The translations under genes were made by a program, and so were the position numbers. From Trichoplax adhaerens (taxonomy: Eukaryota; Animalia; Placozoa), in NCBI RefSeq assembly GCF_000150275.1, contig NW_002060946.1:4669454-4733453 (forward strand): a stretch of DNA of 64,000 nt. The letters are read 5' to 3'. Shown here one piece after another: positions 2,084 to 64,000 of the stretch (the first letter of the stretch is position 1; the number at the start of each line of letters is the position of its first letter). The notes under the pieces were generated by a model, which saw only the letters and a program-made list of their open reading frames with translations, made no database searches and was not told the DNA's origin.

Positions 2084-4382
2084 CTAGCGATTGTCTTCAA
2101 CCATAATTGTTCCTCTTTGATATCCTGTTAATTCCACAAGAATATAGCGATAATCGTAGTTACCTCTTGATACCTAGCATCAAAAATTATAAAAAAAAGT
2201 TATTTTTGTGACATCCAATTTTAAACAAAATAATTTTACATCATTAGAGGTAATACACTTTCACGGAGGATTTAATTTAATTTACATATATGTCATCGCA
2301 TAAATCATTAACCTCTTTCAAATCGACGTGTACGGTTCCTTTATTCCTTGTACCATTGATATAATATCTTACTCTCATATAGTTCACGTCGTCGACAATA
2401 TATTCTTGGCTACTGTTAAATTAAAAATTTGTAGTAATGTTAACTTAGGTTAATATCAAATCAATGTACAAGAAAACTTCTTCATTACAATAGGAAAATA
2501 TGGAAAAATAGCAATTACACTAATCTATAAAAAGCAAACGTGATGATAACGTACGTACATGCAGTAAAATAAGTATAGTATTGCTTAAAATAGCGAAATA
2601 GCATCACTATAACAACTTAATGGTACCTAATATTTCGATATCTATTTCTTCCTGACTGATCGCCATGAGCTGTTATTGGAGTGCCAAGAGCATCAATAAC
2701 CTATTAATAGAGAGTCATTACATCTTCACATTGCAATAGTTAACAACACGAATAGTCATGTCCATGACAATATCTCTAAAGAGATGATAAATAAAAAAGT
2801 TCGGATGTTACCTAGACCAGGTATCCTGTATTTAGAAAAAAATTAATTATTATTATGGGAAATAAGTACGTACTTGTTGATTACTCTTGACTAATTTCAG
2901 GGTATGAGAATATATATTATTGGCACTGTTACTGGAGAATAATTCCCTAAAAACGCTCCAGAAGAGGATACCTATATTAAGTAAATTTTTAAAACGTTAT
3001 TGTGATATATACGGGATCGATGTCCTTGCTAAATATTGCGCTACACTGATTGCATTAGCCATTACGCGTTGACAGCAACGCTACTGCTCAGTTGATCATA
3101 ATTACGAGTAATAATGCGATATTAAATTTTTCTGAGGCGGAGTAGAAAACAGTGGACGCGTATGTAAGAATGTACATGGTTCTTTTGCTATTCTAACTAA
3201 AATTAATTTGATAACAATCCTACAATATTTAACATTAGTTTATTTTTACGCTTGTGTAACCTAATATCGATAAGCAAAGGCTATCATTTCGCAATTAGTT
3301 TATCTTACACTAGTAATATACCTGTAATACCAAACCCAATTAGTATAACTCCAAAGTAGCTTGCATCCTTACCGGCTTTAGCAACTGCAAATTATAAAGA
3401 GAAGTCTGATCAGGCTTAATCCTCACCACGATATAATTATTTCACCAATTATGATATGCGTAAACATTCTAAAATTTATCGTGGGTATATTTAATAAGCT
3501 TAATAAGTGTGACGATGTGTTCATAGAACCTCAAATGGGTTATACTTTCTCTTCAGAGAAATACAAGCGCGTACTGTATACTCTTATTAAAGCGCTATAA
3601 AAGTAGTTCTATTCAAGTTCCTGCATTCGTAGAAGAGTTTGCAAAAGTGCCTGTATGGTAATGGTAAAAACGGTCATTTATAGCTTGCGAATGATGCAAT
3701 TATATGCCTTCTATTGCAAGGTAAACTAACAATCGTGCATATTGATTGTCGATAGCAAGTTAACAAAAAGGAGTTTTTTGTAACTGCGGACTGTCCTACA
3801 ATACTAAGACTTGTGTAAGTAAGTGATGGAATAATTAGGACTTTACCATTGTACATAGTACAACATACACGTATACACACAGATCTATTAAGGAGTTGTT
3901 GATAGTCCCTAGGCTACACCATGATTATGGTAGCTTGAGACCATTTCATGAAGTATTGCACATTTTCAGATTGATGTTGAGTTATTTACAGTATATGAAA
4001 ACGTATACAAAGTACGCGTCTATGAGTATTCAGTAGTCGTCTGGGCACCTTTTCTCGCAGTACTTAGTTGAGTTTCCGCCCTAGAATCCGATTCTGTTAG
4101 AGCACTTCGAAATTGCTTCTTCTCATTGTCACTATCCGTGGAATAAAGTTGAGTAATCATCAATATCGCTGGCTTTGGTTGATATTGACGGTATGAAATA
4201 ACGTTGCCAAGAGAAACAGCCGATGATCGACACCATCGAGCATCTATGTTTACAATGCTATAATTTCTACATTGCTTTGGCAATATAGAAAGGAGGCTGC
4301 CGAAGATAGAGGATGATCTATTCGACAACTGATAGATTTTAGTAATACACCGATGGGTTGTAGAAGCGCTAGCAACGATCAT
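2084..4382 (-). CDS. TIMM21: Mitochondrial import inner membrane translocase subunit Tim21 (6 exons)
   Basis: Spliced translation: R/S-rich presequence ...QLSTARK|VAKAGKDASYFGVILIGFGITG|ILFWSVFRELFSSNSANNIYSHTLKLVKSNQQ|VIDALGTPITAHGDQSGRNRYRNIS|SQEYIVDDVNYMRVRLYINGTRNKGTVHVDLKE|VSRGNYDYRYILVELTGYQRGTIMVEDNR*. This matches Tim21 hallmarks (FxELFS, GTV, YxxRYIxVE, TIxxEDNR). Start codon (4382) is less certain than the rest. Confidence 0.9.
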
Positions 4383-46624: not shown

Positions 46625-49239
46625 TGAGAATAAGATGTTATTTATGTTGAAATTTCATGAATGCTACATTAGCCTTATGTCTAATGATAGAAATCAGGCA
46701 ACGAAAGATAGCATGATATTCTTTGATGACGTGGAATGCAAGTTGTTAATTGCTTCTTTTGCTAGCGTAATACATGATCCAATTTTTACCTTCCACGTTG
46801 ATTAGTAAACGAGAGTGAATGTTTTACACTTGAATTGTATTCAGATTAGTAGGGTCGTAGTTAAAGAAAGAAAACACTATCCTAGCATATAGTGCAGAAA
46901 ACATTTATTTTTTCTCACTATCAAAATACAAAGGCAATCTAATTTTAAAAACTAGCAATAACGAAATATGATTTAATCATGATCATCATGGCTTTTATGT
47001 CTTTAACCCAACAACAGTGAAATATCGTTTGATAGATGAATTTTCCTTTGATATTCAACTTCTACGATTTAATAATTTGGTCATGTCAAAAATGACTTGG
47101 TAGCTTATTGATCTATCTGACATAACTCTAACAGTGATTTTCATTTATAATTTTATTATCTTGACAAACTTAATTGTATTAGTATTTATAATCCAGGCTA
47201 ACTATTTAATTTATAATTATTATCATTACTATTAGTTTCGTCTGGATTGAATCATTGTTGTCTAAAATATTTATCATATGGTAGAAAAGTGTTAAATCTG
47301 GCCTAATTAAGAATTAGCTTTATTTAATATTAAAAAAAAACAAAAGTAACTTTTACCGGCTAGGGTGAAAATATATTTATCCATGTTAATTAATTAATTC
47401 ATTCTATAATACCATCTTTTAAGTTATCTACATCGATTATATACCCAAATATCTAACCTAGTCATGATTTGCAACTTTAACGAAATAACGACACTCATAT
47501 GGTATAAAAATTTTTTACTTCATCATTACATTTTTGGACTCCATAATAAAACTACCAACTTATATTTAATTACCGATTTCTTGGCTTTAATAATCTATAT
47601 ATAACATATACATATATCAATCAATTTCATGTATCAGCTGTACTTTAATAGACGATTGAAAAAAAATGCTACTAAAGGTAATCATGTTTTACCCTACAAT
47701 ATATTGGATATAGTATACGAGTATATAGACGATATCTCTTACGCAACACTATCCAGATGAATACTATTTACAAGATGTATCTAGAAGATCATGATCGAGA
47801 CGGCATTTCCTAGTAAGTCCATCTATCCTATTCCATTATTACCGTAACTCTTTTTCAGGAATATAGCAAACTAGTGAAATACGACACACATTGATGATAC
47901 TAAAATTACGTATGCATAAGTTTCAATACAATCACAAAAAGGAAATAAATCCGCGTGATTAAAACTATAAAATTACTGGCCTAATTCCACTTTGGGTAAA
48001 AATACTACTTCGTTAGCTAGATATAATTCTTAAACCCTACTAGATACCTATACTATCATAATAGAATGGACGGATATTGCAGTGTATCTGCTACATCGCA
48101 AATTTCACTCTACTAAATTATATTATAAAACTTTCTAGATCTCAGGTAGATTGTTTATTGGAAAACTTATTCGATTAGCAACAGAAGCATGAACATCTTA
48201 TTACTGACACAGTATGACTAGTAGAATTACGGTAAAGATTTCTTGAGCTGCCTGATAATATAATTCTTAAAGGAATGGAGTTGGAAAGTTACTGCAATTT
48301 TTAGAAATAACTTAATTCACTGTAGTAATGCATTTAAAATGTTGATTTAAACGCCGAAAGTACGAACCTATGGCAGGAATACTTACTGAAATAGGTCTAC
48401 GAGCAATTTATCTACCGATGACTAATGCTGGCTAATTACATCGTGGATTACTTATTATAGCAATAGTAGTAATGGTCGTAAAGGTATAGCTCTACTAATT
48501 AAGATTTACTATATGAGCTGATTGACTCATTTGGTAGAAGAAAACGATCTCTGGCGAGAATACTTGGCACAACCGTTAAAGAGCGATACAGCAATAAGTT
48601 CGTTTCGAACAACGACTGTAATTGCAGATCTTAATAAAATGATTTTCTCGATTGATTACCATTTTCCTTTCTTAAGTAGACAGTGTTGTTTGTCACTCGA
48701 ATTTTATTTTCTAGTAGATTTCGATCCATTGGGCTAGATAACAACACTATTTTTACTAGTAATTCTTTAGTCTTCTAATTGTATTATAGAACAAACAGTA
48801 TACAATACGCAAGGAATTTTAGCATTTATTTAAGGGATTCTAGAGGTTATCCATAGACAACATTTCCATTGGGATATTAGCATACAAGTGGTCACAATTC
48901 TAATGTTCTATTCGCGGAATAGACTTAATAATAATGTAAGTAATGAATATAAGGCTGGCATATACTCTATTCTATGGATACCATCAAATATTTTCTCATC
49001 GACTTGTTATTGTCACTAAAATGTATATTCTCCGATGAATTGGATAATTGCAGTCAGATAGAGTGATTAGCTAATGAATAACCGACTTTCCGTTATTACT
49101 AGAAGAAGAAGAATAGAACCAGTTCCTATTCCCAAAGGGGTAACGAACTATCATTTTAATTTGACTAATGAGGCACTTTTTTAACGTAACTTAGTAACAG
49201 CGGTTGCTGTTGTCGTATATCTTGTCAAAGGTAGGAGAC

Positions 49240-49572
49240 TATAAATGCATAAAGCTTAGGTAAGGTCAGTATTTGGATCAGATCGCAAATTTGCCTCGAA
49301 GAAATAGTCCTTACTGAGAGGTAAGCCTGAAAACAATTTTACTATAATTAATGTTCAATCTTTTCGTTCATATTTCACTTTCTGTAAATCGTTTTATGGC
49401 ACAATCTTTCTCTGGTAATAGCGGTGACAAATATTAGCAATTACAATAACATTGTGATCTATTAGTAATCGCTGAAAAATCTTTATCTGATTTATTAGTA
49501 TTTGTCGTTGACTGAATATGCTATGTCATGGATGCTAAAAGTCTAAATTAATCTCAATTCTCGATAGACAAA
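49240..49572 (+). promoter_or_regulatory. TATA box, Inr and non-coding first exon/5'UTR intron of the secreted precursor gene
   Basis: TATAAA at 49240-49245; TCAGT Inr at 49266-49270 (A is 28 nt downstream); donor AG|GTAAGC at 49321; acceptor AG at 49566-49567, 5 nt before the ATG. Confidence 0.7.
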
Positions 49573-50793
49573 ATGAATATGAAATTGGCTCTACTTGCAT
49601 CATGTGTCTTCTTGCTTGTCTGTGCTTCAGACGAGTTGCAAGGGTATCCGCATGAAATTCAAGAAGACGATTTCGATCTTAAAGAACTAATTGAAGATAG
49701 ATGGGAAGACCGGCTTAAAGAACGCCACCGATATCAAACTAAGGCGGATCAAGAAACTAAAAGAAATGATCAAACGAAAGCTGATCCTCTATCTCGAGCA
49801 AATTACGAAACGAAGGATAACTATCAAACCAAAGCGGAGCCAGAAACCAAAGGAAATTACCAAACTAAAGGTAATTATCAAACTAAAGCGGACCAAGAAA
49901 CCAAAGGAAGTTACCAAACTAAGGGAAACTATCAAACTAAAGCGGATCAAGAAACCAAAGGAAATTACCAAACGAAAGGTAATTACGAAACTAAGGGAAA
50001 CTATCAAACTAAAGCGGACCAAGAAACCAAAGGAAATTTCCAAACTAAGGGAAACTATCAAACTAAAGCGGATCAAGAAACGAAAGGTAATTACGAAACT
50101 AAGGGAAACTATCAAACTAAAGCGGACCAAGAAACCAAAGGAAATTACCAAACTAAAGCGGACCAAGAAACCAAAGGAAATTTCCAAACTAAGGGAAACT
50201 ATCAAACTAAAGCGGATCAAGAAACCAAAGGAAATTACCAAACGAAAGGTAATTACGAAACTAATGGAAACTATCAAACTAAAGCGGATCAAGAAACGAA
50301 AGGTAATTACGAAACTAAGGGAAACTATCAAACTAAAGCGGACCAAGAAACCAAAGGAAATTACCAAACGAAAGCGGACCAAGAAACCAAAGGTAATTAC
50401 CAAACTAAGGGAAATTATCAAACTAAAGCGGACCAAGAAACCAAAGGAAATTACTAAACTAAGGGAAACTATCAAACTAAAGCGGATCAAGAAACGAAAG
50501 GTAATTACGAAACTAAGGGAAACTATCAAACTAAAGCGGACCAAGAAACCAAAGGAAATTACCAAACGAAAGCGGATGCCCCAACGCCAGCAAATTATGA
50601 AACGAAAGGCAATTACCAAACTAAAGAGACTTTTCAAACCAAAGCCCCTGAACTCGCAATGGAATCATCTAATGAAGATTTTGAAATCCACGCTACTGAA
50701 ATTTTGTCTCATGACGATAAAGACGACGACATTGCGAGATTGATAATCGACCATTTAGCTCGAAAGGAGTCCCTGAAGAATACCAATAACAAT

Positions 50794-50826
<33 letters not shown>

Positions 50827-51678
50827 AACAACAATAATAATAACAATTCTAATGGGGTAAGTAGCTTAGTAGATTGTTTTGAACTATTCTCCTGAGTATT
50901 CCACCGGAATATTGTAGTAGTATAGCATTAACCCGTTGAAAGAAAGCATTCTGTTAATTAGCAATTATTATACAACGTTACATTGTGGCCATTACGAATA
51001 GCTAAATGCATTATTTCCCACTAATCTCATTGATTTTAATGATAGTATAGCAATGACCTGTTGAGAAAGTATTCATTAAACTTACAATGTTGCTCTTAGT
51101 TTGTAGCTCACAACAACATAATCACAATCCATCATTATTCGCTTAATATTCCACAACATTGATCGTAGCGTACTGTATCACAGATGATTGGATTGCGTTA
51201 AGACTATTACTGTTCGTTTAAACAGTCGGTTAGTAGAGATAATAGTTCATTAATTTTATATCATTCAACGACATTAGCTTGTTTAAATGCTATCCTAAGC
51301 AAGATTAGGATACGATTTCAATGACATTACCCTTCATTTATATCGGTTAGTGAACTAGGAGGATATTGCTAGACAGATTAGATGACGTGATGTTAAGTAG
51401 CTACTTCAACTAGGACAAATTAGATATAGAATAGACGTTCTTTATGTCAAAACAGCAGTGGTAGAGTTGTATTGATATCAACTGCAATGATTTACTTCGA
51501 TATAGCCCTGAAAAATTGTGGTCTACATTCACTGCCTAAAAATATTTTCATTTTTTTGATCATGTTTGCTTTCTAGTGGTATCGTCGTCGACGTCGTTTG
51601 GCTCGCCGTCGCCGCTGGGGTAGCCGTCGTCGCCATGCCTCTTACTTCAACAATTGTCGCTGCTACTGCAGCAGTTAA
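49573..51678 (+). CDS. Secreted prepropeptide-like protein: signal peptide, hexapeptide repeat array, acidic region, poly-Asn, C-terminal Arg-rich Cys-containing peptide (exons 49573-50856 and 51577-51678; in-frame TAA at 50455-50457)
   Basis: Signal-like MNMKLALLASCVFLLVCAS. The frame continues past the TAA into ORF 50659. Donor GGG|GTAAGT at 50857; pyrimidine-rich acceptor ttctag| at 51576; phase-0 GC-rich last exon WYRRRRRLARRRRWGSRRRHASYFNNCRCYCSS*; AATAAA at 51783. Inter-unit variation is mostly synonymous in this frame. Confidence 0.8.
49726..50643 (+). repeat. Coding minisatellite: 51 x 18-bp units (GNYQTK, ADQETK, GNYETK, GNFQTK and variants)
   Basis: 918 bp = exactly 51 units in register from HRYQTK to ETFQTK; 48 units end in TK. 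Confidence 0.95.
50785..50847 (+). repeat. (AAC/AAT)21 microsatellite encoding poly-Asn
   Basis: 63 nt of AAY codons in the precursor frame. Confidence 0.95.
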
Positions 51679-54600
51679 ACTTGATCGTTATGCAATATAA
51701 AAACTGCTGCGGTCATCCAAAATTACTGTAGACTGCATCACAGCTAGTTAGTAGTTGGGTAAACTTTTATCAAGAATTTGACAATAAAGTTTAAAATAAA
51801 GTCTTTACTAAATCCAATTCCAGGTTCTTATCTAACATATATAATGCCCTAAAAAATTAGCGTTATTGAACGTAAAATTTAAGTTACGCAAGATTGATTT
51901 AGGTAACAAACTTGTGCATTATCAATTACTATGATGTGCTAAGTATAATATGAACCATTTTGCAATTTGGTAGTAAAATATTATACAGCGTAAAAATGAG
52001 ATGAAGTAGTAGAAAAATACGATGAAATAATATCATGAGGTACCAAGGGTAGAAATAGCTTATCATTGTTGAGGGGTAATTTTGTAACGATGTAAGTGAA
52101 GGCATGAACATGTAAATATACTGATATTTCATCAATGGAACTAGAAACGATACGGAAATGACTGAGAATCTGTTGAAAGATTTTATCTTGAAATCAGTCA
52201 TTAAATCTAGTTCGTTATTTTGGCGAAATTAATAATATAAAGCATCTTGATAATGTTGCCATTCCGGTTAGGATTCCAGTAATGATATATGAAAATTAGG
52301 TCGTAGAGTAGCGACAAGCAGGAATTATATTAGAGACAACAGGTTCAATTTAAATGGTTCTAAATGAAGTTATCGTCGATGTAAAGTACTAACACCGTCT
52401 TCTATATTTTAATGGTGACAAATTCATTTATTCTCGATCATAGAGGTGAAACACGGTCTTTTACGTTTATATTCCGCCCATATACAGAGAATACTGGGAA
52501 CTCTGAAATTCTAGTTATCCATGATACTTTTTGTATGGATTATTGATAGGTATAGTTAGGTGATAAAATATCATGTTTAGCTAATTATCCTATCTTGAAA
52601 CCGGAAAATTAGTTGATATGCAATGAAAGGACTACTATCATCCGGATTTTCACTAATAGGAACAGTTGTGCTGTTGACCACGAGAGTTAAATAAAATTAA
52701 AATTTCCATTAAAATATTTACTATAGGTAAATACTCGGATTCGTATCAGTAATAAGAATTCGAATAATGATATGAAGAAAAATTGATTAAACTCGTTGAT
52801 AATGATGAAAATTTGGAGATGTAATAATAGATATCAACAACTGGCTCACAATTGGCCATTTGCAATAGTATAAGGACGATATTATAATTAGTAACTGCCA
52901 AAATTGGGAACACCTTGGCTGTCATCAAAATTTTCAACCACTTTAATCTGATTCTCCAATTCAAGGCTGCAGCTATAATATTATCCGGATAGAGATCTTA
53001 AAAATTGTTTTTCTATCTATGGTTATCCGTATTATATTGATAATCTATACAGTACATAGGTCAAGTGGTTTCATAGGCTATCTTGGCCTATCTACCAGTA
53101 ATGGAGCCGATAAATGAGAGCAAATTAATGGAAATCGATAGATACATCGAAATAAAATTGATACCTATAGCAATTACTACAATCGATACCTGATTACAAT
53201 TATTCACCTAAGGATTGTTTCAACTTTCTAGAACATTACATTATATAGTATTCAGGAATTTCGCTGCACTACCATCTTCAATAAGTTAGATAATTATAAT
53301 CATGCATATAGTGTACTACCTCAAAAGGTTCAACGTGCAGTATTTGCTATCGTAGTTTCATTAATTAGCAAAGACTGAAATTAGTATTATCAGCTTATCT
53401 CGAATTTAATGAAATATAGTATAGTATTTTTAATTGTAAGGGGTAAAGGACAAAGTATAAAGAACTTTTAGAGTGAACGTACATAGATAGAGTTATTTTA
53501 ATTATCATGAATATTTGCTCGTCGTCGTACTTTATAGTATAATTGTATGTAAGACATCACGCAGTCTTTATCGTGCCGATATACCAATAATCGAGCAGAT
53601 GCATAATACCAAGTTGATTAAAATGGCTTTTAAAATCCAGGTAACGGAGATGATAAAGTCAGTACTAGATTGATCTTATGTACCATGCTACGCAAGCATT
53701 CAATTACCATATCCTGACTTTAAGGCCTACATAATTTCAGCAGTACTGCCATCTTCCATGTATTAGATAAGGTCGATATTAATCAATGTCAATAAAAACT
53801 CCTAGTCTGTTAACCATCAATAGCAATAATAAACAATTCAAACATTATTGTCTCCAAATGAAAGTATTAATGTATTGCTAATAGTAATGAGACAGAAATA
53901 CGTTAACGGCATGTAATAAATCATATTTTACTATACAGAGGCCATCAATAATCAAGAATTGACATCATCATTAGCCACCTGCTGATCAATAGACAGTAAA
54001 TAGCTTTTTCCTATGGTGTATTGACTATATCTTATGGCACGCTTATTATTACCATTCAAAGCCATTAATCGTAATATTGCCAATAGAATATGTATTAAAA
54101 GCCATTCTCTTTAATTTCTTTGCTTTATTAGATTAACGTATGTCGCCATATTGAATAACCTTCCTAAATTTGTCTAGCCAAATCTGAAATTAGCCTGCAT
54201 ATGACGATAATAGACTTACGTTATCAACTCTTGTTAATATAAACAGACATCTAATTTTCCTTTAAGAGATTAGCGCCACTATGACGACCAAAATGAGATA
54301 AAGTAGTTATTTTGACAATACAGTCTTTAGTCAACAGTGAGGCAATAGAGAAATAGTAGCCATGACTCCATCAATTCAGAGCCTATAACATATATTGTCA
54401 AAGTAGTCAATGCGTAATTAGAGTTATATTCGTACTTTAAGCAGTCACGTTCCAAACTCAACTACTGACTATCCCACGAAACTTAATTAAGTGACTGGCT
54501 AAGCTAATTTTACATTTCTGTTATTATGCAATGTCATTCAATACAGAAATATTGATTATTTTAGTAATCACATACTTAGGTACCTAACTAGGTTAGACTC

Positions 54601-63916: not shown

Positions 63917-64000
63917 ATGAACATGAAATTGGCTTTGATTGCCTCCTTACTTTTGTTGGCTGTTATTGTCAACGCTGAGGAAGAGAAAACTCCAGTCCGT
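63917..64000 (+). CDS. 5' end of a second secreted precursor, probable paralog of the gene at 49573 (truncated by the window end)
   Basis: MNMKLALIASLLLLAVIVNA-EEEKTPVR; DNA gatagtcaaaatgaacatgaaattggct vs gatagacaaaatgaatatgaaattggct at 49563. Confidence 0.8.
   Translation, partial: MNMKLALIASLLLLAVIVNAEEEKTPVR

Follow-up and report, generated by a model that had tools for sequence, protein, structure and literature searches.

Does the segment from position 49573 to 51678 of a 64,000-nucleotide stretch of the Trichoplax adhaerens genome hold a working gene, and if so, what could its product be doing? The stretch, called the window here, covers positions 4,669,454 to 4,733,453 of contig NW_002060946.1 (C1411:4669454-4733453 in our genome scans, which ran over the 105.6-Mb assembly). 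A sequence-only reading of it had joined an open reading frame (ORF), its continuation past a stop codon and a short hidden exon into one large secreted precursor that ends in a cationic peptide, and had proposed a new antimicrobial or effector peptide. The locus is a genuine spliced three-exon T. adhaerens gene, which is transcribed, unannotated and single-copy. On balance, it appears to be a divergent paralogue of a placozoan multigene family of secreted precursors. What is new is this unannotated and architecturally unusual member; the family itself is already proposed in the literature, with an antimicrobial role assigned by analogy, and the coding integrity of the reference copy is in doubt.

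A transcribed three-exon gene

The reading frame that opens with the ATG at 49573 runs to 50856 with a single interruption, a TAA at 50455-50457. Counting by script gave 428 codons up to 50856 and a further 33 in the last exon, and it bore out the ORF coordinates and the other counts of the sequence-only reading: 51 hexapeptides, a run of 21 Asn, and 13 Arg, 2 Trp and a CxCxC motif within the final 33 residues. The coding exon is followed by a GTAAGT donor at 50857, and the second intron (50857-51576, 720 nt) closes with the acceptor TTTCTAG ending at 51576. The 102-nt last exon (51577-51678) that had been postulated behind this intron, and the frame proposed for it, turned out to be right.

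The evidence for splicing comes from bulk contigs of four runs from four studies, one of which (X19) is recorded as RNA, while X15, X16 and X18 are probable transcriptomes. In these latter three, contigs over 51576-51698 are preceded by 29 letters that are identical to window 50827-50855, which upholds the predicted 50856^51577 junction, and X18 carries both sides of it in a single 227-nt contig. Exon contigs reach depths of 1129, 1225 and 104 in X15, X16 and X18, respectively, as compared to 26, 18 and 9 for contigs retaining the intron, such that the intron contigs are 12-69x shallower than the exon contigs of the same runs. This difference implies that the three runs are RNA and that intron 2 is efficiently removed.

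An additional joint, 49320^49568, was found in X19 and X18, and it reveals a non-coding 5′ exon (49219-49320) that had been absent from the earlier gene model. The contigs join 49318 to 49566 with the GT..AG cut at +2, and a loose contig end in X16 is concordant. The intron that is removed here (intron 1, 49321-49567, GTAAGC...ATAG) is evident from both the RNA contigs and the sequence. The 3′ end of the 5′ exon is fixed, but its start is placed no further downstream than 49219 by X19, and the X18 contig extends to 48955. Since an in-frame TAG at 49305 is encountered when the frame is read across the 49320^49568 joint, the ATG at 49573 is the start codon. In the X18 contig, 364 nt of sequence preceding the 5′ splice donor are joined to the coding exon, and the contig begins upstream of a TATAAAT at 49241. 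At the other end of the gene, the 3′ untranslated region (51679-51800) contains AATAAA at 51783 and again at 51795. All of these features, like those of the precursor described in the following, lie on the forward strand.

The layout that had been read from the sequence, in which a signal peptide and an anionic propiece precede a cationic C-terminal peptide encoded by a separate last exon, is right, and we found it in the paralogues as well, which adds to its credibility. The gene product begins with 19 hydrophobic residues, which are predicted to form a signal peptide of about 19 aa (49573-49629, MNMKLALLAS...), and continues with a first acidic stretch of 32 aa (49630-49725, net charge -8 by script count). 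This is followed by the hexapeptide array (49726-50643), and then by a segment of 71 aa, again with a net charge of -8, in which a second acidic stretch, an RK site, the Asn21 run and SNG bring the coding exon to its end in phase 0 (50644-50856). The 33-residue tail encoded by the last exon, after which comes the TAA stop, has a net charge of +13 and is devoid of Asp and Glu. It ends in ...CRCYCSS, and instead of a C-terminal Gly it has only an internal W-G-S-RRR.

The array consists of 51 units that follow each other in register as x-x-x-[Q/E]-T-K, 19 of them GNYQTK, 14 ADQETK and the remainder variants thereof. With 306 residues it makes up two thirds of the protein, and it carries a net charge of +9. 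Each unit ends in a single Lys, with neither a Gly-basic motif nor dibasic flanks. Among the G-type units, 41 codon differences are synonymous and 10 non-synonymous. Genome scans found no such hexapeptide array elsewhere in the genome; it is confined to this gene.

For the database searches, the coding exon was queried in pieces (ORF1, the N-terminal 76 aa and the post-stop 133 aa). None of these had a true protein homologue, placozoan or other, the post-stop piece being compared to 1.84 billion representatives, and the sole matches were to repeat motifs of phage or virus fibre-like proteins, with 37-46% identity over approximately 55 aa of the array. Specifically, the motif YQTKGNYQ is close to the [YF]Q[PT]KGNYQ repeats of phage tail-fibre and long virus-like proteins (P0002, P0003, P0010, P0011), one of which has a Gp53-like_C domain. 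Membership of the gene in the phage tail-fibre proteins was rejected, as it has no fibre domain and the matches are to short motifs, and the likeness is probably one of short-motif convergence. No Pfam match was obtained in either coding-exon piece. AlphaFold, run on ORF1 as a single sequence, returned no confident fold (pLDDT 39, unreliable). The nearest neighbours by ESM features were polysialoglycoprotein (0.84), the apidaecin precursor (0.78) and semenogelin, all of them below 0.9 and thus to be taken as leads.

Relatives in the same genome

The last exon of the gene begins with a signature, AG followed by TGG NNN (CGN)x4, that occurs 15 times in the genome as compared to once in a reversed control, which speaks against chance. 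At least 15 loci share a common plan: a similar signal peptide is followed by an acidic propiece, and a phase-0 intron separates this from a last exon that opens with Trp-x-Arg4+; the same exon plan was seen in the fetched loci wherever the upstream exon could be found. They lie in clusters at C1410:4.75-4.78 Mb and C1411:6.59-6.63 Mb as well as at single loci, and three of them, paralogues B and C and a pseudogene copy, are situated 12-26 kb downstream of the gene discussed here.

Paralogue B starts within the window (63917-64000, forward strand) and continues past its end, as fetched DNA shows. Its signal peptide is near-identical to that of our gene, and so is the DNA around the start codon. 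An acidic propiece follows, and then a phase-0 GTAAGT donor and a last exon that reads W-S-R5 ... W-G-K-K, 327 nt past the window end. Paralogue C is located on the minus strand, comprises eight LYYRRR units and ends in F-G-K-K. The pseudogene copy, at about 68.2-69.0 kb in extended window coordinates, has a stop in its signal peptide.

Several lines of evidence place our gene among these loci. Its first 19 residues match the family-type signal peptide M-[NK]-x-[KT]-L-x-L-[LIV]-A..., with an hhalign probability of 90% and an E value of 1.6e-6 against a profile of six other members. The signal peptide is followed by an acidic propiece, here in the form of two stretches of charge -8 that are split by the array. 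Both the phase-0 GTAAGT donor and the last exon with TGG-NNN-(CGN)4+ are present, and the gene clusters with family members within 26 kb. The best alignment of its tail is to the single locus L008, with 59% identity over aligned columns, and the two have the pattern W-aromatic-R5+...RRR...H...CRCY in common; CRCY is found in L017, too. There are also clear departures from the paralogues, namely the array between two acidic stretches, a seven-fold longer propiece, the poly-Asn run, the lack of a Gly-Lys end and the tail with three Cys.

Other members show variations of their own. At L008, CRCY is followed by GKK and then by an acidic extension (3014-3094), and L017 has a counterpart at 3243-3320. 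Four tandem members (L009-L012; C1410:4.753-4.781 Mb, minus strand) have the signal peptide MNTKLILVAT, and their Arg exons continue into ...VSS(I/A)xNKIS..FINS, which has the appearance of translation past a GTAAGT donor, such that these genes may have a further exon.

The sequence-only reading had not recognised the peptide as belonging to a described family. In this it did not hold, as the relatives in the same genome most probably include two published genes. Five Trichoplax genes have been described as 'arminin-like' putative antimicrobial peptides (AMPs) by Mayorova et al. 2025 (PMC12013895), among them AMP1-AMP4 (Ta 55945, 56030, 60631 and 64402). According to that study, arminin-like precursors have a length of about 150-250 aa and consist of a signal peptide, an acidic N-terminal region and a basic C-terminal region with a C-terminal Gly, and expression of the genes reaches very high levels in peripheral ventral epithelial cells (PMC12013895). 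AMP1 is listed as XM_002111637.1 and AMP2 as XM_002111672.1, and Ta 55945 (AMP1) is annotated as 'alpha defensin' (PMC12013895). In our scans, the first exon of a member of the C1411:6.6-Mb cluster passes the threshold of the Pfam model Defensin_propep (PF00879; 23.7 vs 23.6 bits), and in a whole-genome scan the matches to this model were confined to the family cluster at C1411:6.594-6.620 Mb. One cluster member, TRIADDRAFT_63910, is XP_002111678.1, a number close to XM_002111637/672. From these Pfam matches and accession numbers, as distinct from a sequence comparison, AMP1 and AMP2 most probably belong to the Trp-poly-Arg family. This cluster, with L014-L017 and the sites C1411:6602534 and 6619426, is the sole place in the genome with a Defensin_propep match. 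An identity of the family with 'RWamide' was ruled out, as the RWamide precursor in the literature is unlike it in sequence, and a literature text search with the peptide strings and TRIADDRAFT_63910 retrieved no paper.

The public annotation of the family is poor. The TRIADDRAFT_63910 model translates the Arg exon in a frame that is not the right one, whereas TrispH2_011546, a model from H2, is without the Arg-rich exon. Our locus shows that an abundantly transcribed secretory gene is absent from public protein sets; its relatives are misannotated, and single-cell atlases and peptide catalogues that build on these gene models will therefore under-count the family.

An in-frame stop and two haplotypes

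With respect to the 461-codon protein that had been proposed, the codon count stands, but the protein reads through the in-frame TAA. This triplet lies in unit 41 of the array on the reference haplotype, at a place where the sibling units carry a Gln codon. As written, the reference allele terminates at residue 294 and lacks the cationic peptide, and its product would consist of the signal peptide, the first acidic stretch and 40 repeats only. Past the TAA, 133 + 33 = 166 codons remain open, and the lesion is for this reason recent, allele-specific or a base-call error. The open codons, together with the excess of synonymous differences among the units, fit a recently functional gene. The notion that TAA is read as Gln in a variant genetic code was ruled out, since the gene uses TAA as its own terminator and comes from a placozoan.

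The status of the TAA in the RNA is ambiguous. K-mer analysis showed that 31-mers spanning 50455 are unique to this site; in the mapping of contigs, rows in repeats were dropped, such that holes in coverage prove nothing. No contig spans 50465 in X15 or X19, and the one that does so in X16 has a depth of 36, as compared to 435-1487 for the rest of the gene. In X18, a contig covers 50465 at a depth of 273; it differs from the window at 50465, 31 letters from the contig end, and no difference is listed at 50455, which suggests that the T of the TAA is present in abundant X18 RNA.

At the same time, none of the four runs agrees with the window at 49627, 51019, 51046, 51402, 51412 and 51453, indicating that the RNA is dominated by a haplotype other than that of the window. 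Two coding differences, A for T at 49627 in all four runs (Ser19 to Thr, in the signal peptide) and C for T at 50668 in three runs (Ser to Pro), mark the reference haplotype as the minor one in RNA. The other haplotype is also represented in the assembly, since the last exon is found again on a 1540-bp contig (C542) that corresponds to 51474-52676 and is 99.3% identical over 978 bp. It carries a 338-bp insertion between 51698 and 51699, 20 nt past the stop codon (L004 979-1316), into which RNA contigs of X15, X16 and X18 extend. A 223-bp core of this insertion recurs as a dispersed repeat, of which the genome contains at least 40 copies, many of them 99% identical, suggesting that it is a recently active short mobile element. 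For the repeat exon, the assembly contains no alternative-haplotype contig or second copy. If the stop is allele-specific, the locus would be a natural heterozygous knock-out.

Possible functions and known counterparts

We lean towards the view that the gene encodes a secreted precursor whose Arg/Trp/Cys tail would be an effector peptide of the arminin-like kind, with secretion, cleavage and activity deduced from its plan. The signal peptide would direct the precursor to the secretory pathway, where the anionic stretches could mask the +13 tail during storage. Furin/PC-type enzymes encoded in the genome, in which the proprotein-convertase P domain occurs at three loci, might then cleave the precursor at the Arg runs, close to them, or at the RK site, and the tail that is set free could act on anionic targets, for instance microbial or algal membranes or polymers. 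As compared to its paralogues, the gene would have had its acidic propiece split and expanded by the 51 hexapeptides and the poly-Asn run, and its Gly-Lys amidation end replaced by the Cys-rich ...CRCYCSS.

A number of points weigh against an effector of this kind. The in-frame TAA is present in the reference and may sit in abundant mRNA; the tail would then go untranslated. The amidation signal of most paralogues, a C-terminal Gly followed by Lys or Ser, is missing from the tail of this gene. The protein searches found no homologue outside Trichoplax A/B. Furthermore, AMP1-4 are tied to the family indirectly, by Pfam matches and accession numbers and not by compared sequences. The AMP label of PMC12013895 is itself an analogy, and any activity of family members is putative.

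The stop codon raises the question whether this is a decaying gene, transcribed but with the TAA fixed, so that the cationic exon stays untranslated and any product is a secreted repeat protein cut short at the TAA; the locus would in that case add another pseudogene to a family with fast turnover. We consider this unlikely, even though the neighbouring copy at 68.2-69.0 kb is a pseudogene, the Trichoplax culture lineage is clonal, and the X18 contig over 50465 agrees with the TAA of the reference. The gene has acquired this one lesion only, ahead of 166 open codons, and mRNA decay, the usual consequence of a stop located 400 nt ahead of the last junction, is at odds with the high contig depth. 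In addition, contigs with the T context are missing from X15 and X19 and shallow in X16, and another allele dominates the RNA.

More doubtful than decay is the idea that the array is the functional product, i.e., a secreted, disordered polymer of Thr, Lys, Gln, Asn and Tyr that serves as a glycosylated matrix, granule filler or surface coat, with the tail as a module for sorting, condensing or anchoring to polyanions such as mucus or cell walls. The share of the array in the protein, a peptide sequence that was kept despite many synonymous changes, and the secreted repeat polyproteins among the ESM leads are consistent with this, and the odd number of Cys in the tail would suit intermolecular links. 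However, no other family member has such an array, and no confident fold was predicted for ORF1. Nor is there an obvious enzyme for cross-linking Gln and Lys: a single Transglut_core locus and no Transglut_N were found in the genome, such that the cross-linking of the Q/K repeats by transglutaminase is unsupported. It seems improbable, too, that the gene is a signalling-peptide precursor in which the Arg runs are convertase sites and the product is a short Cys peptide after the last RRR (H...CRCYCSS), paralleled in L008 by an amidated ...HCRCY. The H...CRCY end after RRR in both genes, the presence of convertase genes, and the Gly-Lys end of most paralogues, a classical amidation signal of regulatory peptides, would argue for such a product. 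Yet processing of this sort would leave a lone Trp-amide from gene B, which makes it unlikely that all Arg runs are mere cleavage sites. Moreover, the prohormones known from placozoans are built differently, with multiple copies and dibasic sites, and the hexapeptides here end in a single Lys without a Gly-basic motif.

Combining these elements, one may also picture a composite secreted material, in which the Gln/Lys/Tyr/Thr hexapeptide polymer is tethered via the poly-Arg/Cys tail to anionic surfaces (microbes, algal walls, mucus). Together with the 15 or more largely unannotated poly-Arg relatives, it could make up the arsenal of effectors with which placozoans digest food externally and defend their surface, and to which an algal-lysing activity would belong; this is a long shot. 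Placozoans are among the simplest animals and digest externally on microbial films, and their effectors thus bear on the origin of animal innate immunity and feeding. The gene also illustrates how precursors evolve, in that repeats expanded within the propiece while the amidation end was lost and Cys residues were gained, and its last exon supplies a defined 33-residue peptide for activity tests.

Among known systems, the published multi-copy neuropeptide prohormones of placozoans and cnidarians carry identical peptides in tandem between dibasic sites, with an amidation Gly or an acidic-Gln N-terminus; they differ from our gene, whose units end in a single Lys and lack a Gly-basic motif. Repeat-bearing AMP polyproteins of the apidaecin type are likewise secreted precursors with tandem short units, and PR-39 or protamine-like Arg-rich peptides match the extreme Arg content of the product. 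However, the near-neutral repeats here have no dibasic flanks, and there is a single C-terminal cationic copy, such that we see resemblance without homology. Cathelicidins and alpha-defensins also neutralize a cationic mature peptide with an anionic pro-region, and cathelicidins place the mature peptide on the last exon, but our gene has no cathelin domain, given the lack of a Pfam match in the coding exon. In the case of the alpha-defensins, the six-Cys domain is missing, as the tail has three Cys, and the N-terminus does not match Defensin_propep at E<=1; the threshold of this model is reached by paralogues but not by this gene, and the match comprises the signal peptide and the acidic run only. 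Hydra arminins are alike in layout (signal peptide, anionic propiece, cationic C-terminal peptide) and have high epithelial expression (as cited in PMC12013895), but they show no detectable sequence similarity, are Lys/Arg-rich with a C-terminal Gly and without an array, and are restricted to Hydra. The closest counterparts are AMP1-AMP4 of Trichoplax itself. Our gene is unlike these in its 461 codons, the array and poly-Asn run in its propiece, the CxCxC tail without an amidation end, the stop in the reference and the lack of a gene model, but it shares with them the species, the signal peptide, the acidic N-terminal region and the basic C-terminal region, and, with the exon plan also in common, the genes very probably constitute one family.

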